IMG/VR virus record: IMGVR_UViG_3300040801_001224
Location: 1-64,000 of that record
DNA: 64,000 bases
Reading direction: 5' to 3' (one strand)
Part shown: in pieces, positions 2,542 to 46,822 of the stretch
Numbering within the stretch: the stretch's first letter is position 1
How the letters are laid out: every line of letters begins with the position of its first letter
Translations under genes and position numbers: made by a program
The notes under the pieces: model-generated
Database searches by the model: none
What the model saw: the letters and a program-made list of their open reading frames with translations, nothing else
What the model was told of the DNA's origin: nothing

Positions 2542-2570
2542 TTGACACAACCACTTTTCCACTGTATAAT
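2542..2570 (+). promoter_or_regulatory. sigma70-type promoter giving a probably leaderless mRNA
   Basis: TTGACA-N17-TATAAT; ATG 6 nt after the -10 box. Confidence 0.85.
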
Positions 2571-2576
2571 ATAAGT

Positions 2577-2825
2577 ATGGATATTCCCGTACTCAATCTA
2601 TTTGAAATAAACTATGAAATAGCTGATAAGACGAAAGAAGACAGCTTAATTAAAACTGATCAAGCAGAACTATTCACTGGTATACTTGATCTAGAAGAAC
2701 AGTTGAATGGCAGAAGATATGCTCCCGTAGTTAATGGACGTATAGTAACAAAGGAAGTCTTAATAGAACATTTAAATCTCTCAGACGAAGACTTATTCAA
2801 GTATAGACTGGAAGGACTCTTATGA
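2577..2825 (+). CDS. hypothetical protein, family A
   Basis: Ends SDEDLFKYRLEGLL. Confidence 0.8.
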   Translation: MDIPVLNLFEINYEIADKTKEDSLIKTDQAELFTGILDLEEQLNGRRYAPVVNGRIVTKEVLIEHLNLSDEDLFKYRLEGLL

Positions 2826-3100
2826 AGTTCATATACGTGATAAGAGATACAGATATAAGTAAAGTCAATAACTTATTAGAAGAAGAACTGGGCCATATCC
2901 CATCGTACGAACGTTCCCCATATGATGAAGGTCAAATGTATATGCCATCCATATATAAAGTTACGTATATACTCGGGGAAGAAGAAGAACTATATCTAAG
3001 ACTTAGGTGGGGAAATATCAGTAACTTTGGCCCATATATAACATTTATGATGAGAAAGAACAGTATATATGCTTATGATAAACATAAATTCATTAAATGA
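2822..3100 (+). CDS. hypothetical protein, family A
   Basis: EEEELYLRLRWG. Confidence 0.8.
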   Translation: MKFIYVIRDTDISKVNNLLEEELGHIPSYERSPYDEGQMYMPSIYKVTYILGEEEELYLRLRWGNISNFGPYITFMMRKNSIYAYDKHKFIK

Positions 3101-3187
3101 TATCTATATAATGGGCAGAATCATTAGAAAATATCTTAACGATGCGATACTGGTAAAAATGGGCATGGCTCGGCTGGGGAGAAAAAG

Positions 3188-3412
3188 TTGAAAAAACTAT
3201 ATGTGACTGCGTCAGATCTAGAGTTAGCCGAGCTCTATCTATATAAGAATAACCTTGAATACGTGGTGGTAGAAGTTAAACCAATAGTAGCCGAGTCAAG
3301 AGTTCCCATATATGAAATAAACCTATTAGAAGATGAAGACGCAATGATGTTCGAAATACTCGGGGGAGAACCTGAGTTCAGAGACAATCTAATCAAATGG
3401 TGGGAATCATGA
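3188..3412 (+). CDS. hypothetical protein, family A
   Basis: EDEDAMMFEILGG; TTG start after GGGGAG. Confidence 0.75.
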   Translation: MKKLYVTASDLELAELYLYKNNLEYVVVEVKPIVAESRVPIYEINLLEDEDAMMFEILGGEPEFRDNLIKWWES

Positions 3413-3618
3413 GAGGAATTAAAGTTAAAGAGTGTAGATGCCCTGCCGCTGTAGAATATCTAAGAGATCACCTGGGTATAGAGTTCACTATACGATCTAG
3501 CGATGAATTCATTGATGAGTCTATAATAATAATTAAGGACCAACGTGATGAACTCATATGGCAATTAGCCGGGGGGATCGAAAGTATGGAAAGCTATATA
3601 TGGGAGAATGCTAAATGA
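3409..3618 (+). CDS. hypothetical protein, family A
   Basis: RDELIWQLAGG; ATGA overlap. Confidence 0.75.
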   Translation: MRGIKVKECRCPAAVEYLRDHLGIEFTIRSSDEFIDESIIIIKDQRDELIWQLAGGIESMESYIWENAK

Positions 3619-4391: not shown

Positions 4392-4420
4392 TTGACAAAA
4401 AAATTTGGTTGTGTTATAAT
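4392..4420 (+). promoter_or_regulatory. sigma70-type promoter, probably leaderless
   Basis: TTGACA-N17-TATAAT; ATG at 4427. Confidence 0.85.
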
Positions 4421-4426
4421 GTCTTT

Positions 4427-4768
4427 ATGGATGATTCAAATAAATTAATTTATGAGATAGATAATTTACAATGGTCGCCGTATGGATCCATACGACCTAT
4501 TGGTCATGATGGCGATTATAATAATAAGCGTTATGTATTCAATGGTGTTCGTCATATTATACGGGAAGTATTTAGTGAGCAAGGTTATGAAGTTGGTGAA
4601 ATCATTATACGGGAAATTGATACGAGTTTTAAGACCCAGTTCATAATATACCTGGAGAGTGCCGAAGACCAGTTTGCTTGGATCATGACAGATACTGATG
4701 TCATTAGTGAAAGAATAGATGATGAAGTCGAATCTTTTCTTGACATGATGGCCCTAAAGAGTATATAA
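4427..4768 (+). CDS. hypothetical protein, family A
   Basis: LESAEDQFAWIMT; the track start at 4340 runs through the promoter. Confidence 0.75.
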   Translation: MDDSNKLIYEIDNLQWSPYGSIRPIGHDGDYNNKRYVFNGVRHIIREVFSEQGYEVGEIIIREIDTSFKTQFIIYLESAEDQFAWIMTDTDVISERIDDEVESFLDMMALKSI

Positions 4769-4775
4769 TATACTT

Positions 4776-4856
4776 GTTCAGTTGTTTTTAAATTGAACTC
4801 CTTTTTTATTGGAACGAATTTTACCCCCAGTGTGAAAATGCCGGGGGTATTTTTTT
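4776..4856 (+). ncRNA. candidate sRNA 1 (hairpin, anti-SD CTCCTT, terminator)
   Basis: TTGACA 4740 / TATAAT 4764; stem GTTCAGTT/AATTGAAC; no ORF; intrinsic terminator. Confidence 0.55.
4822..4856 (+). terminator. intrinsic terminator
   Basis: TACCCCC...GGGGGTA followed by T7. Confidence 0.85.
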
Positions 4857-5011
4857 CAAGGACTTAGGGTCATTACTTATGTAATACTTTCAAGGACTTA
4901 GGCTCGTTGGAAACTCTATTAAAATCAAGGGCTTAGGCTCATCTCTTTCTTCAATGAAATCAAGGGTTTAGGTTCACAGTTACCTCAGAATAAAATCAAG
5001 GGTTTAGGGTC
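4852..5011. repeat. array of five ~20-bp repeats (core TCAAGGRYTTAGGNTC) with unique 14-16 bp spacers
   Basis: Cores start at 4856, 4890, 4925, 4960, 4996; partial inverted copy at 5037-5044. Confidence 0.9.
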
Positions 5012-5151
5012 GGTACCAGGAATGGTTCCTTAAAGTGAGCCTAAGTTGTACCGGTCCGTCGGAGTTCCGGTCTAGATCATTCAGGCAACCGGGGTGTTTG
5101 TCTCGTCCCACCCCCCGGGACCTCCTCAGCGTTATTCCTAACTATACCACT

Positions 5152-5180
5152 ATTATAGCGAATTGGCTGGTCAATGTCAA
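5152..5180 (-). promoter_or_regulatory. reverse-strand sigma70 promoter pointing into the repeat array
   Basis: Minus strand TTGACA-N17-TATAAT followed by AGTGGTATAGTTAGGAA. Confidence 0.85.
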
Positions 5181-6302: not shown

Positions 6303-6380
6303 AATAATACTTATCATATGTACGATCAGTTATGTAGAGTGAACGGTTGACTTCCGGTCTACCATTTGCTATAATGTGTT

Positions 6381-6671
6381 ATGGATCTAAAAGAAGAAAA
6401 CTTTAGTATATACGTTGCGCTAGTAAGCTTTACCCTATCTCTGGGTGCTATCGTGTGGCTTCACTGGTGGGTTGGCATTGTGACATTCATCTGTTGTGTG
6501 ATTGGCTTTGCCATATTCGTAGACCGTTACTACACTAAAGAGATTAAGATTATATCCCCATTCCCAGTTAAGCTTGAAGGCCAGTGGCGATTTGTGTTCT
6601 ACGTTATACGTGGTAGCTATATGGTAACACCCGAGCGGCTATTGATGGATAAAATTAAAAATAGTGGTTGA
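6381..6671 (+). CDS. membrane protein
   Basis: Two hydrophobic segments; TTGACT-N17-TATAAT ends 5 nt before the ATG. Confidence 0.75.
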   Translation: MDLKEENFSIYVALVSFTLSLGAIVWLHWWVGIVTFICCVIGFAIFVDRYYTKEIKIISPFPVKLEGQWRFVFYVIRGSYMVTPERLLMDKIKNSG

Positions 6672-6720
6672 CATCCACTATTAATGTTGTTATACTTCTG
6701 GAAATAGTTAGGAGAAACAC

Positions 6721-7005
6721 ATGAAATATTTTGCAGAGTTCTATAGGGCACCATTAAAATCATATCCACAGCGTAACCCAGAGACTGGCCGTTACGAAGT
6801 TATGCCTAATCCCGACCCAGAGTTGCCAGTACCAGTGTGTGGTACTAATGGCCATTTAATACTGGACGGTCGCAAGAGCAAGTATAGCCACATGTCACAG
6901 GCTCGTGCCGTTGCTGAAGCCAATGGTTGGGTGGCATATCAGATTGTGAAGGGTGAAACGTTTACCCGCAACACTCAGGCAGTCACACCAGTAATGTACA
7001 TTTAA
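6721..7005 (+). CDS. early hypothetical protein
   Basis: Own promoter and AGGAG SD. Confidence 0.85.
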   Translation: MKYFAEFYRAPLKSYPQRNPETGRYEVMPNPDPELPVPVCGTNGHLILDGRKSKYSHMSQARAVAEANGWVAYQIVKGETFTRNTQAVTPVMYI

Positions 7006-7069
7006 AAATAGTGGTTGACACGACCACTTCTTGATAGTATAATGGTTCTAAACAGTTAGGAGAACAATT

Positions 7070-7435
7070 ATGTTAGTATTTACAGAAAGCCCAGGTTTAA
7101 CTACAGACGGTACTGGTTTTTGGAGTACATCTGAACTTACAGTAACAGTAGAAAAGTTAGACCTATCCTCAAATATTAAACGTGACTTTGGTGAGTTGCG
7201 TGTTATATTTGACACTGATACTTGGGACGTACAGATGGAAGGTCTCATTTATACAGACAAAGGTTTTATGACCGAGCTTAAAGCGTTACTGGAAGCCAAT
7301 GGTTTAGACGCCAGTGATATTGGTTACAGTGAACAAGGTATGCAGGGCGAGAACTATGTTAGCCTGGATGTTGGTGAGAACTTTATTGGCTCATGGTTGG
7401 ATCGTGGCATTGACTTTGAGGAGTACAACTTCTAA
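7070..7435 (+). CDS. early hypothetical protein
   Basis: Own promoter and SD; LIYTD and YSEQGMQG segments. Confidence 0.85.
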   Translation: MLVFTESPGLTTDGTGFWSTSELTVTVEKLDLSSNIKRDFGELRVIFDTDTWDVQMEGLIYTDKGFMTELKALLEANGLDASDIGYSEQGMQGENYVSLDVGENFIGSWLDRGIDFEEYNF

Positions 7436-7668
7436 TGTTACAGTTATTTGCTGAACAACTTAACGCGGTTTACCTAGTAACAGGTAGGCCGCTCATTACA
7501 TTCCCCTTGAACGACGAGCAGTCTTACCTAATGGCTCTGGAGTTACGTAGAGCTCAACAAGGATTAACTGCCCAGGTTAGACAGTTTGGGGTTAATGAAG
7601 ACATGATAGAGCTTGCTGAGTTCTATCAGAACGTTTACGAAGAACTCGTGGAGTTAACTAATGAATAA
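7435..7668 (+). CDS. hypothetical protein
   Basis: TAATG coupling. Confidence 0.75.
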   Translation: MLQLFAEQLNAVYLVTGRPLITFPLNDEQSYLMALELRRAQQGLTAQVRQFGVNEDMIELAEFYQNVYEELVELTNE

Positions 7669-7762
7669 CAGAAAGAACTTTAAGGACGCATTGGTCATTG
7701 GCGTCATTGTTGTATTGGCGTTCACTTACTTTGGTGACATCTTTGCTACGGTGGTTATATGA
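7661..7762 (+). CDS. 33-aa membrane peptide (not in ORF track)
   Basis: SD GGAG; MNNRKNFKDALVIGVIVVLAF... Confidence 0.6.
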   Translation: MNNRKNFKDALVIGVIVVLAFTYFGDIFATVVI

Positions 7763-7929
7763 AGCCCGGCATGTTGTTTGTTGCCAGCTTAATGTTAATG
7801 TTCTGGCTGGGATTGGGCCTAGCCATTGCTATGCTGTTTGTGATTAACATCTTTGTTGGCCTAGCCATAGCACTTGGTTTAGGTATAGTAGCGGCATTTA
7901 TTTTATATTATATCGGACAAAGTGGTTGA
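7759..7929 (+). CDS. 56-aa membrane protein (not in ORF track)
   Basis: ATGA overlap; two hydrophobic helices; stop lies inside the next -35 box. Confidence 0.65.
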   Translation: MKPGMLFVASLMLMFWLGLGLAIAMLFVINIFVGLAIALGLGIVAAFILYYIGQSG

Positions 7930-7990
7930 CATAGTGGTCTGACTTTGTTATAATACGTCTATACTTAGTTAATAATGTACAGAGGTTATT

Positions 7991-8323
7991 ATGCAGGTCA
8001 CAAGAGATTGGATGATTAACTACATTGAGACTCGGGATCAAGCGCAAGTTAACCAGATGGTTGGTAGAGCATTAGTTCAAATATTTAAACGACAGACTGA
8101 TCACGAGCAGAGAGTTAACGACACTAATGTCTGGAATGACATTGGCTTCAGCGCAAGTGACGCATACTCTGGCAGTATCTGTGCTAAGACATTCATGAAG
8201 CGTGGTGCTCTAATTGACTTCCAGTTGGAGAAATGGTTAAAGCCCACACAACATGGCTACCCACGTATCACTAAATATTGGAAACAATTAAACGAAATCG
8301 CACAGAATAAAAAGAGTGGTTGA
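7991..8323 (+). CDS. early hypothetical protein
   Basis: Own promoter; SD GAGG. Confidence 0.85.
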   Translation: MQVTRDWMINYIETRDQAQVNQMVGRALVQIFKRQTDHEQRVNDTNVWNDIGFSASDAYSGSICAKTFMKRGALIDFQLEKWLKPTQHGYPRITKYWKQLNEIAQNKKSG

Positions 8324-8373
8324 CAAGTGGATACTATTTTGCTATACTGCTTATATACAGTTAGGAGAGTATC

Positions 8374-8583
8374 ATGAAATTTAATCATAGCGAATTAAGT
8401 AACGCATTAGAAACACACCTACTCAATGTAGAAGATTGTAATCTACTTGATTACGATGTGGACGGTGTACTGAACAATAAGGTTCTTGGTACAGTGGGAT
8501 TTGAAGCCATCGACGGACATAGCTCATGGGAGGCAGAGTTCGAATATAACATGGTTACAAAAAAAGTAGAATCAATTGGATAA
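8374..8583 (+). CDS. early hypothetical protein
   Basis: Own promoter and SD. Confidence 0.8.
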   Translation: MKFNHSELSNALETHLLNVEDCNLLDYDVDGVLNNKVLGTVGFEAIDGHSSWEAEFEYNMVTKKVESIG

Positions 8584-8650
8584 GTGGTTGACAGGACCAC
8601 TTTCTGATAGTATAATGTCGGTTATCAATTAAACAGTTAGGAATAATTAT

Positions 8651-9739
8651 ATGCCGTTAGTACGCATTATTTCCGGAACCTTCAAGCATGGTTCCAAAGT
8701 CACTCCAGTTAGCAACATCGTTGTAGAGCAAGCAAAAGCCTACAGTGTTGATGAGCGTAGTGGCCCACATGTCACTGTTATGGGTGATGCCAAGTATGGA
8801 CTTCCAAATCGTAAGTGTCGCATATGTGTTACAGGTCCTGAAGACTTTGTAGTACTTGATGATGGTGCTGAGGTGCCAGCAGTAGACACTCGCACAGCAC
8901 AAGAGAAGTTCTTCGCACAAGAGTCAGACGAAGCGGCTATGTCACGCATTGCCAAGAGCTTTGACATCCTCAATGAGATTACAGACGCGGCTGCCCAGGG
9001 TATTATTCGTGGCGTAGTTGTAAGCGGCCCACCAGGTATTGGTAAGTCGTATGGTGTTACTCGAACACTGGAGCAGGCTAACTTCACACGGTCTATTGCT
9101 AACCAGACTGAGAACTATGAGATTATATCAGGTAGCATGACCCCAATTGGTCTATACAAGAAGCTGTACTTGAACCGACATAAAGGTTTTGTTACTGTAC
9201 TTGACGACTGTGACACAGCACTCTTTGATGAGGCTAGCCTTAACTTACTCAAAGCGGCACTGGACACTACAGAGCGTCGTAGACTGTTCTGGTTGTCAGA
9301 GTCACATGCTCTGGCTAAAGAAGACATTCCAGACTGCTTTGACTTTGAGGGTTCCATCGTGTTCCTGACCAACCTGGACTTTGAAGATGTCAAGTCAAGC
9401 AAGCTCCAAGCACACTTGTCAGCGATACTGTCACGTTGTCACTACATGAACCTAGAGATTAGCACAGTACGTGACCAGCTCCTACGTATACGTCAGGTAG
9501 TTAAATTCGGTATGCTGGACAAGTATGCTCTTACTGGCGCACAGAAGCAAGAGGTTGTTGACTTTGTTATTGACAATGTAGACGACATGAAAGAATTAAG
9601 CTTACGTGCTGTGATCAAGATCGCTGACTTAGCTGAAGCTGACAGCAAGGGTTCACTCCAACGTAGCTGGAGAGAGTTAGCAGAGATGACCATGTTAACT
9701 AAAGAATCATACTACAAGCGGCAGTTAGCTAAAATATAG
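8651..9739 (+). CDS. AAA+-type P-loop ATPase
   Basis: Walker A GPPGIGKS, Walker B TVLDDCD, sensor-like FLTN, arginine-finger-like AILSRC. Confidence 0.9.
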   Translation: MPLVRIISGTFKHGSKVTPVSNIVVEQAKAYSVDERSGPHVTVMGDAKYGLPNRKCRICVTGPEDFVVLDDGAEVPAVDTRTAQEKFFAQESDEAAMSRIAKSFDILNEITDAAAQGIIRGVVVSGPPGIGKSYGVTRTLEQANFTRSIANQTENYEIISGSMTPIGLYKKLYLNRHKGFVTVLDDCDTALFDEASLNLLKAALDTTERRRLFWLSESHALAKEDIPDCFDFEGSIVFLTNLDFEDVKSSKLQAHLSAILSRCHYMNLEISTVRDQLLRIRQVVKFGMLDKYALTGAQKQEVVDFVIDNVDDMKELSLRAVIKIADLAEADSKGSLQRSWRELAEMTMLTKESYYKRQLAKI

Positions 9740-9802
9740 GTTGACAAGATGGTTAAAATACGCTATACTATATATAATGTAGAATCCCATAGGAAGAAGC
9801 CA

Positions 9803-9940
9803 ATGAAAGATTATGCAGACAGAAGCTGGACTACTAACGATAAACGTGAGAATTCACAGGGGAGTTGGATAGCTTTTGGTATACTAATGGTGCTCCTGGT
9901 AATCGGTAGTTCCGATATAGTAGAAAGACTGCTGTCCTGA
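9803..9940 (+). CDS. 45-aa single-TM protein
   Basis: SD AGGA; start MKDYADR; hydrophobic C-terminal half. Confidence 0.65.
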   Translation: MKDYADRSWTTNDKRENSQGSWIAFGILMVLLVIGSSDIVERLLS

Positions 9941-10020
9941 GTGAGACAATAAATCACTCTTCCTAACTGTACCCGACCAAGAGTCGGACTTAGCCCGGGT
10001 TAACCCCCGGGCATTTTTTT
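9939..10020 (+). ncRNA. candidate sRNA 2 / 3' UTR antisense to the early-gene RBS leader
   Basis: Unpaired TTCCTAACTGTA (9960-9971) between hairpins GAGTGA/TCACTC and CCGAC/GTCGG, then a terminator. Confidence 0.6.
9993..10020 (+). terminator. intrinsic terminator
   Basis: GCCCGGG-TTAACC-CCCGGGC-A-T7. Confidence 0.9.
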
Positions 10021-10109
10021 CTAAGTTACTGATTCCATTGACCTTTCATTTGTTGACATCCCCCGACCACTTTGCTATAATACACAGTATAAACAGTTAG
10101 GAGAGTAAG

Positions 10110-10325
10110 ATGGACACTGATAAAAGAAAACGTATATTAAGAGACCCTACTGGGTTTGTTCTTAGAACATGGCACGGTGGCCATCAAATTATGGCCAAGG
10201 GTGTAAAACGTTTGAGTGATCAGACCGTACAATTTGTCTATGACCCACTCTCTCCTAATCCAAAATATTATAATGTAAACATTGAACAAACAAACTTGTT
10301 GAATGATATAATAAAACGTAAATAA
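10110..10325 (+). CDS. early hypothetical protein
   Basis: Own promoter and SD. Confidence 0.8.
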   Translation: MDTDKRKRILRDPTGFVLRTWHGGHQIMAKGVKRLSDQTVQFVYDPLSPNPKYYNVNIEQTNLLNDIIKRK

Positions 10326-10389
10326 GTGGTTGACTTCATTACCACTTTCTTGCTATAATACACGTATAGTAAATAAACAGGTACACGTT

Positions 10390-10821
10390 GTGGAATACGA
10401 TCCATTATTAACAGTTAAAGGCACTCGGTCAAAGAAGCTCATAGACTATATTGGTCGCGTATACGATCACTTGGGCTTAGATGCTTTTGTTGAGGTTACA
10501 CTTGTTAAAGAACTACGTGGTGGTGCCCAGGGTTATGCTAACGGTGATGAAGAGACTGTTGACATAGACATTGCTCGCACAGCAGATGGTAGACGTCTAT
10601 CACGTGAGCGTGTTATGATCAACATAGCACATGAGATGATACATGCCCAGCAGTATAATCACGAGCGTATGATCAACGAAGGTATAAGTGTTAAGGATGG
10701 TATGCTTGTTTCAGTCGTTAACTGGGAAGGTACACAGTACATTGGCACACCATATGAAGAGCAACCCTGGGAATTGGAAGCATATACCAACGAAGAACGA
10801 GTATACGAGGCCTGCAAGTGA
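10390..10821 (+). CDS. putative zinc metallopeptidase (HExxH)
   Basis: IAHEMIHAQQY plus downstream PWELEAY; likely GTG start after the promoter. Confidence 0.75.
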   Translation: MEYDPLLTVKGTRSKKLIDYIGRVYDHLGLDAFVEVTLVKELRGGAQGYANGDEETVDIDIARTADGRRLSRERVMINIAHEMIHAQQYNHERMINEGISVKDGMLVSVVNWEGTQYIGTPYEEQPWELEAYTNEERVYEACK

Positions 10822-11063
10822 AAAATGTCCTGGGCATATTGGGTATAGCTATTGCGAGCGTTGCTCTCTTAGCCAGTGTCCTGATCATGTTCGAACAGCC
10901 CGAGCCTAAAGTTATTATTAAAGAGGTTCCCGTAGAGGTGATCAGAGAGCGTCTTGTAAACCCATGTGAACAGCATGGTATGACAGTATCCTACGTCAAG
11001 GAAGTCAAGTACTTTACTGGTGAAGTTCGAATTGGTATTGTTTGTAAGAAGGTTGACACATAA
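10818..11063 (+). CDS. membrane-anchored or secreted small protein
   Basis: N-terminal hydrophobic helix; Cys pair. Confidence 0.75.
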   Translation: MKNVLGILGIAIASVALLASVLIMFEQPEPKVIIKEVPVEVIRERLVNPCEQHGMTVSYVKEVKYFTGEVRIGIVCKKVDT

Positions 11064-11109
11064 TACCCACTTATGTTAAACTATATTTTTATTTAATGAG
11101 GTGAATAAA

Positions 11110-11310
11110 ATGGATAAAGTATCAGTGTTCCTTGGAATCGTAGTAGTTGTATTACTTGTTATGGCATTGGTAACCTACCCCTTCATGTGGGCTTGGAACT
11201 ATGGCATGGTTGTAGCTTTCCCAATGTTAGGAACACTTGAACCACTGCAAGCTTTCTCGGTATTGGTTGTGTTTGCGTTCATGAAGTCAAATACCAGCAA
11301 CTCCAAGTAA
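11110..11310 (+). CDS. membrane protein
   Basis: SD GAGGTG; YPFMWAWN segment; two TM segments. Confidence 0.75.
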   Translation: MDKVSVFLGIVVVVLLVMALVTYPFMWAWNYGMVVAFPMLGTLEPLQAFSVLVVFAFMKSNTSNSK

Positions 11311-11378
11311 TCAAAAAAAAGTGGTTGACATTACCACTTACCTATTATATAATATAGGAAATAGTTAGGAGAATAATT

Positions 11379-11708
11379 ATGTTAATATTCAGTAAAGATG
11401 GTTACACAGTAGAAAAGATCTGGGGTGGCCCAGCTGGTGACCGTATTGAATTCAGTCACCCTGACACTGCTATCCCTGAAGAGTATATCGACAACATCTC
11501 AGCTGGTATACGTGTAGCACAAGACCAAGAGCTTATTGAAGAGCTCAAGCGAGAAGTCGCTAGTGAGTTACAGTTAACAAACTATGAAGAGATTGTTGCT
11601 ATTGACTTCTTTGAAGTTATTTGGGAAGAGCGTATTAAAGGCGTCGTTGACATTGAATGTACGACAACTGGCCGAGTAATTGATCAAGAGTTTGATATTA
11701 AACTATGA
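11379..11708 (+). CDS. early hypothetical protein
   Basis: Own promoter and SD. Confidence 0.8.
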   Translation: MLIFSKDGYTVEKIWGGPAGDRIEFSHPDTAIPEEYIDNISAGIRVAQDQELIEELKREVASELQLTNYEEIVAIDFFEVIWEERIKGVVDIECTTTGRVIDQEFDIKL

Positions 11709-11909
11709 TATCCTGGATAGCAAACAATGAGAGAGTCTATGCCCCCACAAGGGACATAGCTCTCAGCCTGTTTAGTCTAAAAGGGTATACGGTCAATATA
11801 GATGACATCAAGTACTGTGGCCCAGAGAGACGCAAAAAGAAACGCAAATAGTGGTTGACATGTGGACCTAGTGATGTTATCATGTGGTAAATAGTTAGGA
11901 GTTAACACA

Positions 11910-12026
11910 ATGAAAAAAGTAAAAACCAACAACCCAGTTGCTAAATACGATTTCAATCGTGGTGGCTTCCATACCCCTAGCAAGTTCACCCGCAAAATCA
12001 AACACAAAGGTAAAAGATATGAATAG
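11910..12026 (+). CDS. 38-aa basic peptide, ArfA-like (not in ORF track)
   Basis: MKKVKTNNPVAKYDFNRGGFHTPSKFTRKIKHKGKRYE; own promoter and AGGAG SD. The ORF is well supported; the function is tentative. Confidence 0.55.
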   Translation: MKKVKTNNPVAKYDFNRGGFHTPSKFTRKIKHKGKRYE

Positions 12027-12210
12027 TAATTTAATGCGTCTCATCAAGACTGACGTGTATGCAGTTGTGACAGACGGTGCTAACGTATACGTTTACGAGA
12101 GTATCGACTGTGACAGCAACTATAATGAATTAGTCGGCGTATACGAAAGCATTGATAAGTTTATTGAAGCAGGTCTCCCCTGGGAAAAACCTACAGAAAA
12201 AGTAGCATAA
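12019..12210 (+). CDS. hypothetical protein
   Basis: Start MNSNLMR overlapping the previous peptide. Confidence 0.7.
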   Translation: MNSNLMRLIKTDVYAVVTDGANVYVYESIDCDSNYNELVGVYESIDKFIEAGLPWEKPTEKVA

Positions 12211-12280
12211 AGTGGTTGACAAGTGGATACCACTTTGCTATAATACACTTATACAGTAAACAAACAGTTAGGAAAAAGTT

Positions 12281-12838
12281 ATGTCAACGAACGCAACCAT
12301 TTCAGTTATTACCCCTGAAGGCAAAGTATTATCAGTATACAACCATTGGGATGGCTATCCTGATTATTTACTTGATATGCTGACCAAGCACTACAACACA
12401 CTAACCGACGCAATGGCACTGGTTAAGCCAGGCAACATTAGCTCGGTACGTGAGCGTTGTGATGGTGATGTAGGGCACACATTTAACAACCCAATCCCTG
12501 ACCAAACCATTTATTATGGTCGTGACCGTGGTGAGAAAAACCAGGAACCAATGGTACAGGATTTAGCTACATTCGATATTAGCAAGCACCTATTTGGTGG
12601 GCGCCAGGAATATAACTACATCTTTGCTAACGGCCAGTGGATGCACCTACATGAATGGGAGGCTGAGCAGGAGGCTACTAATGAAGTTGAAGACTTTGTT
12701 GGTGATGTTGTTGAGCAAATCCGGGATGACCTAAAGCGGGATGAAACCGGTGCTGTATACGAGTTAATCGAATACTTACACTGCCTGGCTAACCCAGCTG
12801 TTGACGATATCCTTAAGAACTACTTACCCCAGGACTAG
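12281..12838 (+). CDS. conserved phage hypothetical protein
   Basis: MSTNATI...YNHWDGYP...EYNYIF motifs; own promoter. Confidence 0.85.
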   Translation: MSTNATISVITPEGKVLSVYNHWDGYPDYLLDMLTKHYNTLTDAMALVKPGNISSVRERCDGDVGHTFNNPIPDQTIYYGRDRGEKNQEPMVQDLATFDISKHLFGGRQEYNYIFANGQWMHLHEWEAEQEATNEVEDFVGDVVEQIRDDLKRDETGAVYELIEYLHCLANPAVDDILKNYLPQD

Positions 12839-12997
12839 GAGTAACCATGTTATTGTATATTACGTTCACATTATTCTTCGGTAGTGTTATTGGTTTAGTC
12901 ACTAACGAATCCCTAAATTAATTTAAGAAAGTGGTTGACAAGGCCACTTTCTTTTGTTATAATACAGGCATAAGTTAAACAGTTAGGAGTAAAACTT

Positions 12998-13345
12998 ATG
13001 GAAAACTTAATAGACATTTACGCAGAAGCCCGTCAAGCGGCGATTGATGCCTCCAACAACGAAGAGATGGCTTGGAGACTGGCTGGTCGTATGGATGCTT
13101 GTGGCTTTGCTAGTGTTAAGATCTACAAGTACAACGACAAGACCATCCGTTCTAACTCAAAGCTTGGCAAAGCCCTGGAGCAGTTAGGCATCAAGAAATC
13201 ATCTTATGAACGTTGCTATTCATGGTGGAACCCAAGCGAGAATCCCACGCAAGAGATTTCTGTTAAAGAAGCTGGCGCCCGTGCGGCGGCGGAAGTCCTA
13301 AAGAAGTATGGCTTCACAGCATATCTCGACAGTCGCTTAGACTAA
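12998..13345 (+). CDS. conserved phage hypothetical protein
   Basis: CGFA...KEAGARA...SRLD motifs; own promoter. Confidence 0.85.
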   Translation: MENLIDIYAEARQAAIDASNNEEMAWRLAGRMDACGFASVKIYKYNDKTIRSNSKLGKALEQLGIKKSSYERCYSWWNPSENPTQEISVKEAGARAAAEVLKKYGFTAYLDSRLD

Positions 13346-13421
13346 AAAATAACTGTTGAAAGTGGTTGACATCTGTTGACCACTTTGCTATAATAGCTCT
13401 ACAAACAGTTAGGAGATTAAC

Positions 13422-13688
13422 ATGAAATTAACAGGTGAAGCTTACAACAAAGTCCGTGCTGACATTTACATCACAATGGAAGACCAGGGCCTGGGTACCG
13501 ACCTCTTAAACATTATGGACATGAAAGAAGTGCGTCCTAATGTATACGTTGCTATCACAGAAGATTGCTATGATGACACCTACGTTGTGAGCGAGTTCGA
13601 TATGTCTCAGAAGCAGATCAACTTATCACAGCCTTATGCTGTTCGCAACAACTATCCAGAAGCACAACATTTTTTCAACAATTGTTAG
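13422..13688 (+). CDS. early hypothetical protein
   Basis: Own promoter and SD. Confidence 0.8.
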   Translation: MKLTGEAYNKVRADIYITMEDQGLGTDLLNIMDMKEVRPNVYVAITEDCYDDTYVVSEFDMSQKQINLSQPYAVRNNYPEAQHFFNNC

Positions 13689-13697
13689 GAGCTAATC

Positions 13698-13916
13698 ATG
13701 TCACAGTTTGCAGATTTAGTTAGAGATTTTAAGACCCGCGTGGATTCAGGTAAAATAGAACTTGATGCCGCCGCTGATTTATTTGTTGATGTTATTCAAT
13801 CATTGGAGTGGGATTTGGAAGATTATATGACTGGTGACTTTGACAGTTTCGATAACTATGCTGAGTATCGTGAAGAAGAGATTAAGATTGCCACTCGTTT
13901 AATTAAAGGAAAATAG
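13698..13916 (+). CDS. acidic hypothetical protein
   Basis: SD TTAGGAG. Confidence 0.8.
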   Translation: MSQFADLVRDFKTRVDSGKIELDAAADLFVDVIQSLEWDLEDYMTGDFDSFDNYAEYREEEIKIATRLIKGK

Positions 13917-13982
13917 TGGTTGACAACGGTTAACCACTTTGCTATAATACGGTTATAAGTTAAACAGTTAGGAGTAAAACTT

Positions 13983-14324
13983 ATGCAGGACCAAATTCAA
14001 GAATTAGTAGAAGCAATCGTTGAAGACTTCCGCCAGTGGAGTGGACGTTCTAAAACACTTAACGGTTTTGGTTATGACCTGGACGAGCATGTACAGGAAT
14101 TTGCTGACGAGATTAGAGTTAAGCCTGGTCGCAAGTATATCAAGATCATTAAAGAAAATTGTGTTTGGGGTTTCATCGTTAACACTGACACTGACAAGAA
14201 GTTCCGCAAGGGAGACATCCTTAAAGCGGCTGGTTATAACGCACCGGCACGTAACCAAGCACGTGGTAACATCCTGGACGGTGGTTACGAAATTAACTGG
14301 ACTGGACCTTCATACCTTCGTTAA
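13983..14324 (+). CDS. conserved phage hypothetical protein
   Basis: GRKYIKI...GDILKAAGYNAPA..ARGN motif; own promoter. Confidence 0.85.
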   Translation: MQDQIQELVEAIVEDFRQWSGRSKTLNGFGYDLDEHVQEFADEIRVKPGRKYIKIIKENCVWGFIVNTDTDKKFRKGDILKAAGYNAPARNQARGNILDGGYEINWTGPSYLR

Positions 14325-14327
14325 CAT

Positions 14328-14346
14328 AAGGGGGCTTAGCCCCCTT
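14328..14346. terminator. hairpin terminator between convergent genes
   Basis: AAGGGGGC-TTA-GCCCCCTT. Confidence 0.75.
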
Positions 14347-15043
14347 TACACTTTCCGCCTTTATGATATTTGGTCCACATAGATGGATTTATTTCATCTT
14401 TACCACACACAGGACACCATCGCTTAACTTTCCATCTATTAGCTTCTTTCATTTTGGCTATGTCTTCTGGAGTTCTTGCCACACCTTTCTTTAAATCACT
14501 AAGTATTTTCTTCTGATGATCAGGACATGGTTTCATAACCTGTTTGGCTCTTGCATCTTTTATCTTGGCGCGAGCTTCTGGTGAATGGGTCTTGCCGTAG
14601 AAGTGATTGTTCTCACCTTTACTCATTTCTGATATACGAGTTTTATGTTCTTCAGTATGCTTCTTGCCATAAAACGGATTGTTTTTGCCACCGTTCTGTT
14701 TAGAAATGACCTTGGCTAGTTCAACTTTATTATGTTCGTATACTCTGGCAGTTATAGGTGTTTCGTAGTTGATCTTGAGAGTCGACATACGCATAGCATT
14801 AAGAGCTGTAACCATCTTCGCTCTGTCCTTACCAGTAGTCATATATTTAAGTAACCAATGACAGATAAAGTGTTCTCTTGGTGTTAGCAGTACTAGATTA
14901 TCTTTGCTGTTATCTCCACCTAATGACTTTGGGATTATATGGTGACTCTCGTAGTACTCGCCATTGCCTTTGGATCTTTTCTCTTGACTTCGAGAGTTGA
15001 TGATGTTATAATAGGTGGTAGTGTATTTGTTTTGTATAAACAT
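14336..15043 (-). CDS. HNH homing endonuclease with NUMOD3 repeats
   Basis: ESHHIIPKSLGG...NLVLLTPREHFICH; NPFYGKKHTEE and NHFYGKTHSPE. Confidence 0.9.
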   Translation of the reverse strand: MFIQNKYTTTYYNIINSRSQEKRSKGNGEYYESHHIIPKSLGGDNSKDNLVLLTPREHFICHWLLKYMTTGKDRAKMVTALNAMRMSTLKINYETPITARVYEHNKVELAKVISKQNGGKNNPFYGKKHTEEHKTRISEMSKGENNHFYGKTHSPEARAKIKDARAKQVMKPCPDHQKKILSDLKKGVARTPEDIAKMKEANRWKVKRWCPVCGKDEINPSMWTKYHKGGKCKGG

Positions 15044-15113
15044 AATTGCTGATACTCCTTGTTAGTATTAGAGTAGTCGGGACTGCCATCCGCGGACTAC
15101 ACCCTTATTTATC
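15044..15113 (-). promoter_or_regulatory. late-type promoter and structured 5' leader of the HNH gene
   Basis: GATAAATA; hairpin GTAGTC...GACTAC; hairpin ATACT...AGTAT over SD AAGGAG. Confidence 0.6.
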
Positions 15114-15125
15114 AGGAATGTATTT

Positions 15126-15359
15126 ATGATAGCAGAGGTACTGGGATATGTGGCGTTGGCATTCTTGCTATACGCCTACACCCACTCAGATATGTGGAAG
15201 CTCAGGATATTTGGATTCCTGGGCTCCGTTGTCTTCACAATTCAAGCAGGCATGGTGGAGCTACATAGTTTAGTGGTAGCTAATATAATCTTTGCCACCA
15301 TTCATTTATACCACCTAAGAAAACTACATTTAGATAAAAAAGTGGTTGACAATGGTTAA
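15126..15359 (+). CDS. small multi-TM protein (YgjV-like)
   Basis: Three hydrophobic segments; MWKLRIFGFLGSVVF. Confidence 0.65.
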   Translation: MIAEVLGYVALAFLLYAYTHSDMWKLRIFGFLGSVVFTIQAGMVELHSLVVANIIFATIHLYHLRKLHLDKKVVDNG

Positions 15360-15404
15360 CCACTTTGCTATAATAGTGGTATAGTTAGTTAGGAGTTAAA
15401 CAAA

Positions 15405-15593
15405 ATGAGATTTGTAGATTACAACGGTAAAGAACGCATTATAGTCCCACACAACGAGGACTATGATTGCTTAACCCGCACTCGTATCCTACACAATGTA
15501 CGTGGTACGCAGTTTGAAGTTAACGAGCATGGCGGTGTTTACAGAGTCCACCCATGCAGTGGTAAGCGCATTAAGATAGGTAACTTGTTATGA
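15405..15593 (+). CDS. early hypothetical protein
   Basis: Own promoter and SD. Confidence 0.8.
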   Translation: MRFVDYNGKERIIVPHNEDYDCLTRTRILHNVRGTQFEVNEHGGVYRVHPCSGKRIKIGNLL

Positions 15594-15868
15594 GACCATT
15601 AGCAGAGTTTTGCGAATACATGGTAAAGTCAGCGACTGATGCCAAGCAGTACTTCACAGCTGAAACATACGCAGACCTTAACGCACGATTTGGTCACATG
15701 AAGAACGATGTTGCTCACAGCCACTTGCTCAAGTTAGAGCGAGAGTTAACAGAAGTTATGAACAACACAACAACTTCTATTGACCCTGAGCATGGTGTTG
15801 CGTGGACTCAACGTTGCGATGTACAGCAAGCTATTCGCTGGATGGAAGGCAAAGTTAATCTAAAGTAG
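15590..15868 (+). CDS. hypothetical protein
   Basis: ATGA overlap. Confidence 0.75.
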   Translation: MRPLAEFCEYMVKSATDAKQYFTAETYADLNARFGHMKNDVAHSHLLKLERELTEVMNNTTTSIDPEHGVAWTQRCDVQQAIRWMEGKVNLK

Positions 15869-15877
15869 AAAACGATT

Positions 15878-16060: not shown

Positions 16061-16131
16061 AATAGTGGTTGACATCCCAACCACTTATTGCTATAATAGT
16101 GGCATAAGTTAATAAACAGTTAGGAAAAACG

Positions 16132-16416: not shown

Positions 16417-16447
16417 TCCACTCAGTATCTAAACCGAGGAAAAGAAA

Positions 16448-43931: not shown

Positions 43932-45426
43932 TTATTTTTTTCTCCAATTCGTTGATCATATCCATCATCTTATTCATTTTTACTTCTTGACTTGATAGTC
44001 TTCTGCGTAAATTCTCATTCTCTTTTGATAATTCTTTCACTGCGTTTATTAGTGGCAGAACAAACATTTCACGACTAACACCCTGTGTTTTATCCTTGTC
44101 GCTGTTTACTATGTGTCCGCCAAAAGTATCACAACCTGCGTCGTCTAATGACTTCTTAACGTCCTGCGCGATTAAGCCGTGCATCACAGTTTTTGTATCA
44201 ATCTGGTAATCTTCACGTTCTTTCCAAGTATAAGTTACTGGTCGTAAGCTATTAATGAAGTCTAAACCTAGATTATCATCTTGAATGTTTGTCTTAAAAC
44301 GTTCGTCTGAAGTACTAATCCAAGAACCAGACGTTAGGAAGTTTGCGTATATATGGCCACTTGCGTTACCAATATGTACACGGCCGTCTGCTGTGCCGTC
44401 AAGGCCGTGACCAATAACAATCTGATCAGAACCATTGATACTTGAATCTGCACTGTTACCAATAATAATGTTGTCGCTTAAACTATTGCTTAAACCCGCA
44501 AAGTGACCAATGGCAATGACATCATCAGCTGATACTAAGTTACTTCCTGCTCGTGTACCTATGGCAGTATTATCGTTGCCCGACACTGAAGCAGATAGTG
44601 CTTGCGCTCCGATGCCAACATTGTCTTTGCCCTGTGAATTCGCCATTGAAAACGCACCGATAGCAACAGACCCTGAATGATCAAAGTTTTCTGGGTTGGC
44701 TTGTTCCATTGACTTGTAGCCAATGGCAACGTTTAGATATGAATCAGTCATCTCTTCAGCCGCTTGTGAGCCAATGACTGTGTTTTTATTTCTTCTAAAA
44801 GTTAGGCCTGGGTTACCCCAAGCAGGGAATCCACCAACTAGGTTACGTCCTGCTCTAAATCCTACTGCCACCGTATTGTCATTTGCTACAGTATTCACTA
44901 ATGATTCTGCACCAATTGCCACACACGCCCATGTATCTGCTATTGCCGGATTGCCCAGAGCATTCCAGCCCACCGCTGTATTAGATGTTTCAATGTTTAC
45001 GGTAACGTCAGCCGGTTGGTGACCCGGAATACCAAGGCCTGAATATTTAACACCACCTGACGTCCATTCTGTACCATCATTAATGTATAGTAGATCTGTG
45101 TCAGGGTTATACCATAATGAGCCCGCATCGCCTGTTGGTTCAGTTGTTGATACTGAAGCATCACCACCGATTGGAATAAACGCTGAGCCGTTATATACCT
45201 GTAAGCTTTCTGTCGCAGTATTGTACCACAGCTGACCCAATGTCGCACCTGATGGTGGAACATTGTGGGCAAAGTTTTCAAGCTGATGGAAGAATGCTGT
45301 GGCAACTTCATCGCCATAGCCAATGTAATTCTGTCCTACCAATGGTATACTGAAATCAGTATTTACAGTATTGTCTTGAATACTGAAGTTTGATACGCCA
45401 TCGCTCTTTGTAATAATATATGCCAT
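43924..45426 (-). CDS. tail fibre with C-terminal intramolecular chaperone (peptidase S74)
   Basis: N-terminus paralogous to the 42865 gene; N.A(I/V)G repeats; SDERFKTNI...LRPVTY...GLIAQDV and a coiled coil. Confidence 0.88.
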   Translation of the reverse strand: MAYIITKSDGVSNFSIQDNTVNTDFSIPLVGQNYIGYGDEVATAFFHQLENFAHNVPPSGATLGQLWYNTATESLQVYNGSAFIPIGGDASVSTTEPTGDAGSLWYNPDTDLLYINDGTEWTSGGVKYSGLGIPGHQPADVTVNIETSNTAVGWNALGNPAIADTWACVAIGAESLVNTVANDNTVAVGFRAGRNLVGGFPAWGNPGLTFRRNKNTVIGSQAAEEMTDSYLNVAIGYKSMEQANPENFDHSGSVAIGAFSMANSQGKDNVGIGAQALSASVSGNDNTAIGTRAGSNLVSADDVIAIGHFAGLSNSLSDNIIIGNSADSSINGSDQIVIGHGLDGTADGRVHIGNASGHIYANFLTSGSWISTSDERFKTNIQDDNLGLDFINSLRPVTYTWKEREDYQIDTKTVMHGLIAQDVKKSLDDAGCDTFGGHIVNSDKDKTQGVSREMFVLPLINAVKELSKENENLRRRLSSQEVKMNKMMDMINELEKKINE

Positions 45427-46025
45427 TAGTTAACTTGAATCCTTAATGAATATTCAATTTCAATCTCACGGTTTGCCGCTTTTTTAACTGGGTGGAATAG
45501 TACATGCGTTAACATTAGTCCATATGGACTTCCCACTTCACCTGCTGAGTAAAGAGCAATTTCGTCAAATACGTAGTCACTATCGAAGCTCGCTGGATTA
45601 GTATCCGAACCGTCTGAAGCGTCTTGGTCTGCTGGCTCACCGTATGTCAATGTGCAGGTAACAACAATGTCAGTGTAGTTAGATGTGCTTTCTACAACTT
45701 CAATGAAGTTTTCTGCATCGTTTACGCTTACGTCTTTCTTATATGTTTCGTTATATAGTGCCGCAGTTTCGTCTTTAATATCAGAAACGTTAGCTGGCTT
45801 ATACGCAATAGCACCTGTAGCGTCAATTTGTGTGCCACCGTTACCAAATACCATGTACTTAAGATGTGCTGTGGTAAGTCCTGCTAATGACTCCGCTAGA
45901 GCGTTAGCCATGTTGCCGTTGTGTATAGCATTTGGTGAGTCTGCTAGAATTTGACCCGTATGCTTATCTCTTATAATAAGATGACCTTTTACAAAAGGAT
46001 TTACATTATCTTTTGGCATTGCCAT
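45426..46025 (-). CDS. virion structural protein (baseplate associated)
   Basis: NAIH, FGNGGT, VFDEIAL, LTHVLFHPVKK..NR..EIEYSLRI. Confidence 0.75.
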   Translation of the reverse strand: MAMPKDNVNPFVKGHLIIRDKHTGQILADSPNAIHNGNMANALAESLAGLTTAHLKYMVFGNGGTQIDATGAIAYKPANVSDIKDETAALYNETYKKDVSVNDAENFIEVVESTSNYTDIVVTCTLTYGEPADQDASDGSDTNPASFDSDYVFDEIALYSAGEVGSPYGLMLTHVLFHPVKKAANREIEIEYSLRIQVN

Positions 46026-46678
46026 CCTCCGCTATTCTGATATATGTATGAATATCTATGTCCATTTTCTTTGCACCATTTAGTTAGGTTGAAAACAACA
46101 AACGTTTCACCATCGGGGTTAGTGACTTGCCATGTTTTCGACGACCTTTTAATTCTTCTCTTTATTTCTTCCTGCGAATGTTTAAAACCAGTCACTGGGT
46201 GTTCTTTACCAAATTTGCCAGTATATGGGTTCGATCTAGATTCTTTCCATTTTTCTTTAGTAGAATCCTTGACCTTTTTACCAAACATCGGGTTGCCTTC
46301 ACCCATTCTCGATTCACTCAAATTTCGAACAAATTCCTTAGAACGCTTTCTCCCTTTATGGCTTGGTGGCCTGGCATCCTTACACAAGTTAGTGAGTATT
46401 CCGCCTTCGTTTCTTATCCCATATTTTTCAATAAGCGATGTTTCATAGTCATACGCTTCTTTTTCGCTATTAAATTCTGCAACAATTCTACTCTCAGGCC
46501 ACTGGGATGTTTCATTAAATATTTGATTTATGACATTCTCTTTATATTTATTTCCAGTATCCATTCCTAATTGAGTTAAATACACATGTCTATCTTTTCT
46601 ATCACCACATCCTTTGCCCACATAAAAGGGTTCGCCTGTCCTGTGATCTATTAGTTCATAAACATAATATAAATTCAT
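46001..46678 (-). CDS. GIY-YIG homing endonuclease with NUMOD3-like tail
   Basis: YYVYELID...PFYVGKG; start MNLYYVY after SD GAGGA. Confidence 0.88.
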   Translation of the reverse strand: MNLYYVYELIDHRTGEPFYVGKGCGDRKDRHVYLTQLGMDTGNKYKENVINQIFNETSQWPESRIVAEFNSEKEAYDYETSLIEKYGIRNEGGILTNLCKDARPPSHKGRKRSKEFVRNLSESRMGEGNPMFGKKVKDSTKEKWKESRSNPYTGKFGKEHPVTGFKHSQEEIKRRIKRSSKTWQVTNPDGETFVVFNLTKWCKENGHRYSYIYQNSGGWQCQKIM

Positions 46679-46679
46679 T

Positions 46680-46796
46680 CTATCCTCGTTTTTCCAGTAT
46701 AGTTTTATTCTTGGTCTTGTCCTTGATAACGATTTTATCAATAACTTTGCCATCAATTAGTAGAGTATTCTTGTTGTCTTTTTTATTTGTAATCAT
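46680..46796 (-). CDS. 38-aa protein (not in ORF track)
   Basis: MITNKKDNKNTLLIDGKVIDKIVIKDKTKNKTILEKRG; ATG 6 nt after ATAAATA; resembles the N-terminal strand of the 45426 gene. Confidence 0.6.
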   Translation of the reverse strand: MITNKKDNKNTLLIDGKVIDKIVIKDKTKNKTILEKRG

Positions 46797-46822
46797 TGCT
46801 ATTATTTATCACTCTTTTCCTT

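Follow-up and report, generated by a model that had tools for sequence, protein, structure and literature searches.

A 3' untranslated RNA complementary to the leaders of early promoter cassettes, and a large class of predicted leaderless genes, in an uncultured T4-type jumbo phage

Introduction

The motif of the bacteriophage T4 protein RegB is GGAG, and its effect helps to shift the phage away from early expression. RegB and RegA inactivate early mRNAs after transcription through a motif in or at the Shine-Dalgarno (SD) sequence (review PMC3014915). Here we describe a possible counterpart in a 64,000-nucleotide stretch of viral DNA (bases 1-64000 of the 328,096-bp IMG/VR virus record IMGVR_UViG_3300040801_001224), which is called the window below and to which positions refer unless the genome or a contig is named. 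Whereas RegB and RegA are proteins, the effector considered here would be an RNA, and its putative seed measures 10-13 nt. This element, RNA2, lies downstream of a small early gene and is complementary to the leaders of ~20 early promoter cassettes. The same genome also contains a large number of genes that are predicted to be translated from leaderless mRNAs.

Structured RNAs that derive from coding transcripts and act on ribosome-binding sites are known from the c4 RNA of phages P1 and P7 and from the CpxQ-like small RNAs of 3' untranslated regions (UTRs). RNA2 resembles them in its origin within a coding transcript, in an unpaired seed directed against the ribosome-binding site and in its intrinsic terminator. 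The c4 antisense RNA has a single target and derives from the 5' portion of its operon, whereas RNA2 lies in a 3' UTR and faces ~20 near-identical targets made by the spread of the cassettes. Unlike c4 and CpxQ, it is similar to no Rfam family.

The cassettes themselves are comparable with the PeSL (promoter-early stem-loop) elements, the mobile regulatory cassettes of T4-type phages (Arbiol 2010, PMC2839356; Comeau 2014, PMC4122927). PeSL elements occur in many copies, with an AT-rich upstream sequence, a stem-loop at the promoter and a near-perfect TTGACA-N17-TATAAT promoter that is followed by an SD and a start codon. They stand before small ORFans in the hyperplastic early region of genomes with a T4-type capsid gene, and the cassettes of the window share all of these features. 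There are three differences from the PeSL elements: the palindrome straddles the -35 element in the window, whereas the PeSL stem-loop is situated upstream of it; the transcribed leader itself is strongly conserved here (ACAGTTAGGAG/A); and the cassettes are accompanied by a conserved leader-complementary RNA, of which the available passages of PMC4122927 make no mention.

Leaderless mRNAs, which are abundant in Actinobacteria and are known for lambda cI transcribed from PRM, start at an AUG, use AUG only and lack an SD (PMC4633059). Recognition of the 5' terminus depends on AUG as the start codon. The leaderless genes described here agree with the known ones in having AUG at the predicted +1 position, in starting with AUG only and in lacking an SD. 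In contrast to the known cases, ~50 such genes are predicted here, roughly one in four of the promoter-proximal genes, although the T4-type jumbo phage relies on strong SDs elsewhere, and they are found under both sigma70-type and T4-late-type promoters. For phiKZ no leaderless transcripts were reported, and in AR9 no mapped 5' UTR is shorter than 26 nt.

The Phage Genome and Its Relatives

The record originates from a microbial-mat metagenome; terminal repeats are present, and the genome is judged complete. It encodes a T4-type Gp23 capsid gene, a weak match to a gp55-like sigma factor (E 3.9e-6, 34% identity over 77 residues) and an nrdC.10-like protein that is 45-53% identical to proteins of PA5oct-type jumbo phages. 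Searches of the genome for RegB, RegA, ArfA, the RF-1 domain (ArfB/PrfH), AsiA and MotA found none of them. The first 31 kb of the window consist of an array of small open reading frames (ORFs) on the + strand, and the part from 31 to 64 kb contains large genes on the - strand, one of which is similar to tail-spike proteins. This DNA is best explained as the hyperplastic early section of a jumbo phage that belongs to the T4 superfamily.

Close relatives are absent among 50,697 deposited phage records (megablast and blastn), and no near relative was found in IMG/VR by scans with single proteins or DNA patterns. An IMG/VR scan with the promoter-plus-leader pattern returned 47 distant loci, which were used for comparisons of leaderless genes and non-coding RNAs. 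Syntenic contigs from other samples were reached through homologues of the 362-amino acid (aa) protein encoded beside RNA2. The relatives compared below are contigs L187-L192, which are syntenic at the RNA2 region, and L051, a 6-kb contig that is the nearest relative and includes the counterpart of the region with RNA1 and the iteron-like repeats. Against Rfam, the window gave no family at gathering score, and nothing convincing at 4600-5400.

Early Cassettes and Their Anti-leader Element

About 20 PeSL-like cassettes are arrayed on the + strand (Table 1). The core form of their leader is ACAGUUAGGAG/A, and the 10-mer ACAGTTAGGA occurs in 10 copies on the + strand, compared with 0.19 expected for both strands together. 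The -35 hexamer lies in the loop of a palindrome, AGTGG-TTGACA-N2-3-CCACT (e.g. 6660-6682, 7010-7028 and 11319-11339), that looks like an operator for a putative dimeric regulator. The AGTGG...CCACT palindrome is missing from all leaderless sigma70 promoters.

RNA2, which lacks a dedicated promoter, constitutes the 3' UTR and the strong terminator of a 45-aa gene. The RNA folds with a z score of -4.8, and 13 nt at 9960-9972 remain unpaired. This seed, UUCCUAACUGUAC, is the exact complement, over 10-12 nt, of the cassette leader including its SD, which is common to the ~20 early cassettes. Predicted duplexes between RNA2 and 20 cassette leaders have a mean energy of -14.6 kcal/mol against -6.4 kcal/mol for shuffled seeds (z -6.6; 0 of 300 shuffles), and with 47 other SD-led leaders of the phage there is no excess (z -0.5). 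The complementarity makes RNA2 an anti-leader that is restricted to the phage's own cassettes; it could not serve as a broad anti-SD on the mRNAs of the host. An earlier reading of this DNA from the sequence alone (the sequence-only reading) had proposed that two short RNAs, at 4776-4856 (RNA1) and 9939-10020 (RNA2), expose anti-SD sequences. For RNA2 the proposal held in the restricted sense that it complements the cassette leader and not SDs in general, and for RNA1 it failed, since its pairing is at the level of shuffles.

Homologues of RNA2 are present in L187/L188, L190/L191 and L192, at the same position, 3' of a homologous small gene. The 10-nt sequence TCCTAACTGT is unchanged in five sequences that represent four lineages, three of them relatives. 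Folded singly, the copies of the relatives form the same hairpin-seed-hairpin-hairpin arrangement as RNA2, with z scores of -2.8 to -4.7, and their stems differ in sequence. In L192 the seed ends in UG, and most of the leaders of that contig read CACAG there. The contigs with the element hold 7-12 cassette leaders each, and the element is found in every leader-rich contig that is long enough; the contigs with 1-3 cassette leaders, which are short, show no RNA2-like element.

Two side observations concern the cassette region. The nrdC.10-like gene of L187-L189 (366-1520) has a public gene call that gives the stored protein only if TAG is read as Gln; the call is 22 residues longer than the protein of the window and includes the promoter and leader within the extension. 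It is probably over-extended rather than recoded. A homing-endonuclease-like gene with HNH and NUMOD3 domains runs antisense within the early cassette array (14336-15043, - strand).

Leaderless Genes

The whole genome was scanned for TTGACA-N16-18-TATAAT with at most one mismatch, which gave sigma70-type sites mostly on the + strand (101, against 8 on the - strand). The distance d is the number of nucleotides between the -10 element and the nearest following ATG with an ORF of 35 aa or more. In the sigma70 class d is bimodal: it is 6 at 14 sites, 5 at three and 4 at one, and the remainder is broadly distributed at 16-47 with an SD. The triplet situated 6 nt past the -10 element is ATA in 22 cases, ATG in 16 and ATT in 8, and the usual transcription start is therefore predicted to be that A. 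An ATG at d = 6 opens an ORF of at least 35 aa in 15 of 16 cases, a GTG or TTG at d = 6 in none, and the sole TTG that opens a long ORF is at d = 7. The leadered promoters have AT at the position where the leaderless ones have ATG. The GTGG half-site of the cassette promoters is found in 0 of 18 leaderless sigma70 promoters, compared with 18 of 67 leadered ones.

A second class is associated with the motif G[AG]TAAATA. A T4-type late promoter would have a TATAAATA-like -10 element and lack a -35 element, and the genome would be expected to encode a homologue of gp55. The motif occurs at 125 sites genome-wide, 27 of them with d = 5, and there is an SD-led mode at 16-34. The spacing profile of the remaining 370 TAAATA sites is near-flat, with 6 at d = 5, and 33 of the 41 TAAATA-N5-ATG sites open ORFs of at least 35 aa. 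The bimodal spacing appears promoter-like, and G[AG]TAAATA may be a variant of the T4 late promoter. The predicted starts place an ATG 5-6 nt past TATAAT in 17-18 near-perfect promoters and 5 nt past G[AG]TAAATA in 27. The genome is thus predicted to contain ~18-20 leaderless genes of the sigma70 class and 27-33 of the late-type class, ~50 together. These represent about a fifth to a quarter of the transcription units, under host-type and late-type promoters alike.

Comparison with protein families suggests that the ATGs of the leaderless genes are true protein N termini. Pfam profiles start at residues 1-7 of three products, a metallophosphoesterase (residue 1), a PP-loop/QueC-like protein (residue 7) and a cytidylyltransferase. 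A leaderless product of the UDP-glucose dehydrogenase type begins with MKVAIVGYGFVG, which reads as a Rossmann-type motif. There are two divergent pairs with 32 bp between the ATGs (window 28473-28506 and genome 135290-135323), and each gene of both pairs has a TAAATA motif upstream on its own strand. Both leaderless classes were seen again in relatives. In L051, the position of the leaderless gene that starts at 4427 is occupied by a non-homologous leaderless gene.

The sequence-only reading had counted at least 12 genes with a start codon at the predicted +1 position between 2542 and 46809. The class is borne out, and the number comes down to 8-11 in that range (three sigma70 and 5-8 late-type), which opens at the -35 element of the first leaderless gene and closes at the motif of the last. 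The coding status of the ORF that starts at 46796 on the - strand is uncertain because it overlaps the start region of a 251-aa ORF in another frame. This 251-aa ORF starts with TTG or ATG without an SD, and there is a run of A there, which would be compatible with a choice of start or a frameshift. The region upstream of the leaderless gene at 4427 (4260-4392) is ~76% identical to L051 over 104 nt and is rich in short direct repeats, including TATCCTGTGGGAT twice in tandem; the flanking proteins are only ~40% identical to L051 or unrelated. For a phage with strong SDs elsewhere, it is unusual to have ~50 predicted leaderless genes and to have them under two types of promoter. Such a phage is a natural system in which to study the competition of leaderless with SD-led mRNAs for the ribosome.

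A Proposed RNA-based Shut-off of the Cassette Genes

We propose, at roughly even odds (probability about 0.5), that the anti-leader RNA shuts off the early cassette genes and that the leaderless starts are a parallel design. The complementarity, the architecture and the conservation of RNA2 are observed; start sites, RNA processing, pairing in vivo and timing are what we infer in the following scheme. Host RNA polymerase would transcribe the region from ~100 consensus sigma70 promoters, and ~100 G[AG]TAAATA promoters would be read later, presumably with the phage gp55-like sigma factor. Two start designs would be used in parallel, one SD-led, including the ~20 cassettes, and one leaderless with the A of AUG at +1. 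RNA2 would be released from the early operon transcript by processing, or remain attached to it, and would form base pairs with cassette mRNAs at their leader and SD. Initiation on these mRNAs would thereby be blocked or their decay set off, so that the cassette genes would be shut off as RNA2 accumulates, in what would be an RNA-based counterpart of T4 RegB. Leaderless and other SD-led mRNAs would be untouched because they have no target; this sparing is a consequence of the design and not evidence of a designed switch. The ribosomal protein bL36, RNA1, the DUF7230 peptide and the reverse-strand unit with the iteron-like array, all described below, look like separate features.

Several observations weigh against this proposal. 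There is one anti-leader site in the window, and a bare 10-mer is expected ~0.1 times per strand per window. Seed and target are both invariant, which leaves almost no true covariation between them. The consensus obtained with MAFFT and RNAalifold contains only 9 pairs; it is weak because the hairpins differ in length, and the shared architecture rests on the individual folds. The copy in L192 has no U-tract after its last hairpin. Presence and absence among the relatives are incompletely sampled because all of their contigs are short fragments. Finally, the sequence of this phage was found in no RNA run; the runs that contain it are all DNA, from microbial mat.

The complementarity could alternatively act in cis only, with the 3' end of the operon mRNA (from the promoter at 8588 or 9741) folding back on its own 5' leader and no regulation in trans. 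Such a helix could limit translation of its own mRNA, protect the ends or form an RNase III site. The seed indeed finds its longest complement in the leader at the head of its operon (8633-8650 with 9953-9970, 18 nt, 83%), RNA2 lacks its own promoter, and a ~200-nt RNA of distant relatives is closed by a 20-bp helix between its 5' ACAGUUAGGAAAG and its 3' CUUUCCUAACUG, in which compensatory changes occur. A covariance model of that RNA, however, finds no copy in this genome, and the seed pairs about as well or better with several other cassette leaders (-18 to -19 kcal/mol at 8320 and 10053). The flanking hairpins and the terminator also look like the body of a stable, releasable small RNA. 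We regard an effect restricted to cis as unlikely. An absence of any regulatory pairing, with all the parts unrelated and TCCTAACTGT as a protein-binding or termination-associated motif or as a scar of cassette recombination, would fit the single site per genome fragment and the 10-mer that is by itself only moderately unlikely by chance. It would also fit the genome as a whole, where no extra anti-leader sites were found beyond background at up to 2 mismatches, and the recombination of PeSL-type cassettes (PMC2839356, PMC4122927) could leave inverted fragments. A scar, on the other hand, would not keep 10 unpaired nucleotides identical in four lineages while three stems change and yet pair, and no promoter remnant lies beside TCCTAACTGT; this explanation appears quite improbable.

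The sequence-only reading had gone further and joined the parts into an integrated switch to leaderless mRNAs. Spelled out as a mechanism, such a programme would have anti-SD RNAs block SD-led early and host mRNAs, and a decoy RNA, bL36 and an ArfA-like peptide remodel or occupy the ribosomes in favor of leaderless mRNAs. The parts are largely real, and the genome offers some encouragement in its large leaderless class, an RNA that covers the SD of ~20 early mRNAs, the absence of the GTGG half-site from the leaderless sigma70 promoters and its investment in translation (bL36, a permuted transfer-messenger RNA (tmRNA) and 26 transfer RNAs (tRNAs)). The link between them, a hypothesis, found no support. 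Leaderless and SD-led genes share both promoter classes and thus do not form one temporal class opposed to another, and the RNA2 seed fits the cassette leader and not SDs generally. Pairing of RNA1 is at chance, and RNA1 is not conserved at its position; there is no match to the ArfA or RF-1 families; and the supposed decoy carries an SD followed by a GTG that opens a 35-aa ORF, with a fold at the level of shuffles. L051, moreover, has bL36 and leaderless genes, yet no cassette leaders in its 6 kb. We therefore consider the integrated programme highly doubtful, and only its narrower version, an anti-leader RNA directed against cassette mRNAs, gains support.

A wider form of the shut-off proposal is that, in a clade of uncultured jumbo phages of the T4 type, a conserved 3' UTR RNA with an invariant seed serves as a master antisense switch, which silences in trans all genes with a cassette leader and from which the leaderless quarter escapes. 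We regard this as speculative and, in its full extent, rather unlikely. If it were true, any gene that gains a cassette would join the same early shut-off, and the phage would redirect translation away from its early cassette genes, toward all its other genes, without a protein factor like RegB. If the anti-leader RNA acts as proposed, one short RNA would govern a class of genes, since all of them inherited the same mobile cassette; it would be the RNA counterpart of T4 RegB and would give PeSL-type cassettes a new role.

Table 1. Positions of the features discussed in the text (window positions, or positions on the named contig)
Feature	Position	Strand	Details
PeSL-like cassettes, array of ~20	6668..21650	+	AGTGG-TTGACA-..CCACT..-TATAAT, leader (A)ACAGTTAGGAG/A, then ATG
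Cassette promoter, leader and nrdC.10-like gene	8588..9739	+	leader ACAGUUAGGAA; 362 aa; first gene of the unit ending at the RNA2 terminator
45-aa gene	9803..9940	+	hydrophobic stretch; 3' UTR is RNA2; 44-48 aa in relatives
RNA2	9939..10020	+	hairpin, unpaired seed 9960-9972 (UUCCUAACUGUAC), hairpin, terminator 9993-10012 with U-tract
Predicted leaderless gene, sigma70	2542..2825	+	perfect promoter 2542-2570, ATG 2577 (d = 6), 82-aa ORF
Predicted leaderless gene, sigma70	4392..4768	+	perfect promoter 4392-4420, ATG 4427, 113-aa ORF
Predicted leaderless gene, sigma70	6347..6671	+	promoter 6347-6375, ATG 6381 (d = 5), 96-aa ORF
Predicted leaderless gene, strict late-type	22733..22955	+	GATAAATA 22733-22740, ATG 22746, 69 aa
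Predicted leaderless gene, strict late-type	23054..23234	+	GGTAAATA 23054-23061, ATG 23067, 55 aa
Predicted leaderless nucleotidyltransferase/cupin gene, looser late-type	27721..28485	-	ATAAATA 28485-28479, ATG 28473
Predicted leaderless gene, strict late-type	28493..28865	+	GGTAAATA 28493-28500, ATG 28506, 119 aa
Predicted leaderless gene, strict late-type	28874..29066	+	GGTAAATA 28874-28881, ATG 28887, 59 aa
Predicted leaderless gene, strict late-type	29111..29333	+	GGTAAATA 29111-29118, ATG 29124, 69 aa
Possible leaderless gene, looser	30635..30827	+	off-consensus TCTAAATA, ATG 30648, 59 aa
Candidate leaderless ORF, looser	46680..46810	-	GATAAATA 46810-46803, ATG 46796 (d = 6), 38-aa lysine-rich ORF
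Predicted leaderless gene, sigma70, outside 2542-46809	59840..60148	+	promoter 59840-59869, ATG 59876, 90 aa
RNA1	4740..4856	+	12/12 promoter 4740-4769 (N18 spacer), ~80-nt RNA 4776-4856, terminator 4824-4856
Five iteron-like direct repeats	4857..5015		TCAAGGRYTTAGG, ~35-bp spacing; at least 6 copies in L051, most after GATC
Reverse-strand unit	5004..5180	-	perfect promoter 5180-5152, leader AUAGUUAGGAA, SD GAGGAGG 5127-5121, GTG 5111, 35-aa ORF to 5004
38-aa lysine/arginine-rich peptide	11910..12026	+	phrog_1359, weakly DUF7230; probably the peptide called ArfA-like
Phage bL36, type B	17030..17152	+	40 aa; within an early cassette-driven operon
~200-nt promoter-driven RNA without ORF	L005:627-839
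~200-nt promoter-driven RNA without ORF	L011:7556-7751
~200-nt promoter-driven RNA without ORF	L017:1965-2167	-
~200-nt promoter-driven RNA without ORF	L026:3305-3523
~200-nt promoter-driven RNA without ORF	L028:333-535

Phage bL36 and the 38-aa Peptide

The presence of a phage bL36, as predicted from the sequence, was confirmed by Pfam PF00444 (62.2 bits, cut-off 26.1) and NCBIfam NF002021 (79.1 bits, cut-off 70). The protein is 70-80% identical to bacterial type-B L36. It contains one Cys in 40 residues and thus has no zinc ribbon, which makes it the type B, zinc-independent paralogue. The differences from the copy in L051 are mostly synonymous (dN/dS ~0.03), and phage bL36 is under strong purifying selection. 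We know of no link between type-B bL36 and the mode of translation initiation. Among the 50,697 deposited phage records, L36 gave one weak match, to a 735-kb uncultured phage that is present under two accessions. Small ribosomal protein genes under purifying selection have been described for viruses, including large phages (PMC6375957, PMC7162821), and the gene described here is of the same kind. The term L36 is absent from the main text of both papers (Mizuno 2019, PMC6375957; Al-Shayeb 2020, PMC7162821), and a phage-borne type-B bL36 is an addition to the ribosomal proteins named there.

The ArfA-like peptide of the sequence-only reading is probably the 38-aa lysine/arginine-rich peptide of Table 1, and the likeness was not supported: a six-frame search of the whole genome gave no match to PF03889 at E <= 10, and the RF-1 family had no match either. 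The peptide matches phrog_1359 (1e-8) and, at 19.5 bits, falls below the cut-off of DUF7230. Its homologues are hypothetical proteins in T4-like phages of the CC31/S16 type.

RNA1, Iteron-like Repeats, and the Reverse-strand Unit

RNA1 folds with a z score of -3.8 and is plausible as a small RNA gene, an orphan candidate. Its CUCCUU sequence pairs with leaders no better than shuffles do (z 0.0 for early leaders, -0.7 for the others). A search for targets found no complement of more than 13 nt, and those of 10-13 nt lie at arbitrary sites in a number near chance; a match of 10 nt at the SD of the capsid gene was within chance and was rejected. In L051, the syntenic gene is directly followed by the repeat array, and RNA1 is absent at that position.

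The promoters at 4740 (+) and 5180 (-) face each other, with -35 regions that are perfect inverted copies of one another over 15 nt (ATCTTTTCTTGACAT). The stretch between the promoters, within 4732-5188, contains RNA1, a shared terminator and the five iteron-like repeats, an arrangement that could represent an origin or a regulatory hub. The reverse-strand unit had been described as an RNA with a leader and a perfect SD but no ATG. This description of the sequence is accurate, and the role of a decoy that was attached to it does not follow, as a GTG 9 nt past the SD opens a 35-aa ORF. Tested as a structured RNA, the transcript folds no better than shuffles (z -0.2 to -0.6). The unit may just as well be a module for regulation or replication as a decoy.

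A metagenome scan with the iteron-like repeat gave 103 stretches, of which 80 loci were listed; none of these is a relative of the window by BLAST, and the seven loci inspected are telomere-like satellites. Beyond the reverse-strand promoter, the small tandem genes at 5278-5450 and 5467-5652 look paralogous by eye. The former follows a GATAAATA site at d = 24 and has an SD; it lies close beyond that promoter.

Non-coding RNAs in Distant Relatives and Other Features

The ~200-nt promoter-driven RNA mentioned above was found in five of the distant loci (Table 1), and it has no match in Rfam. In a further locus, L036, its 5' motif heads a tRNA operon. PA5oct, a distantly related jumbo phage, is alike in its dependence on host RNA polymerase and in its TTGAC/TATAATA promoters, and its left-end region is rich in non-coding RNAs to which no function is assigned (PMC7318152). 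In contrast to this likeness, those RNAs share no sequence similarity with the elements described here. The terms antisense and tmRNA are absent from the main text of the PA5oct paper (PMC7318152).

The permuted (two-piece) tmRNA of the present phage lies outside the window at genome positions 124149-124495 and encodes the tag ENDEIFALAA. It scores 95.6 bits against the Rfam model tmRNA_permuted, and the closest model is betaproteobacterial. The 26 tRNA genes are located at 261-291 kb of the genome. ARAGORN also reports, at genome positions 266270-266347 and likewise outside the window, a tRNA of unassigned identity with the four-base anticodon tttg, which may be either a false prediction or a tRNA of the frameshift-suppressor type.

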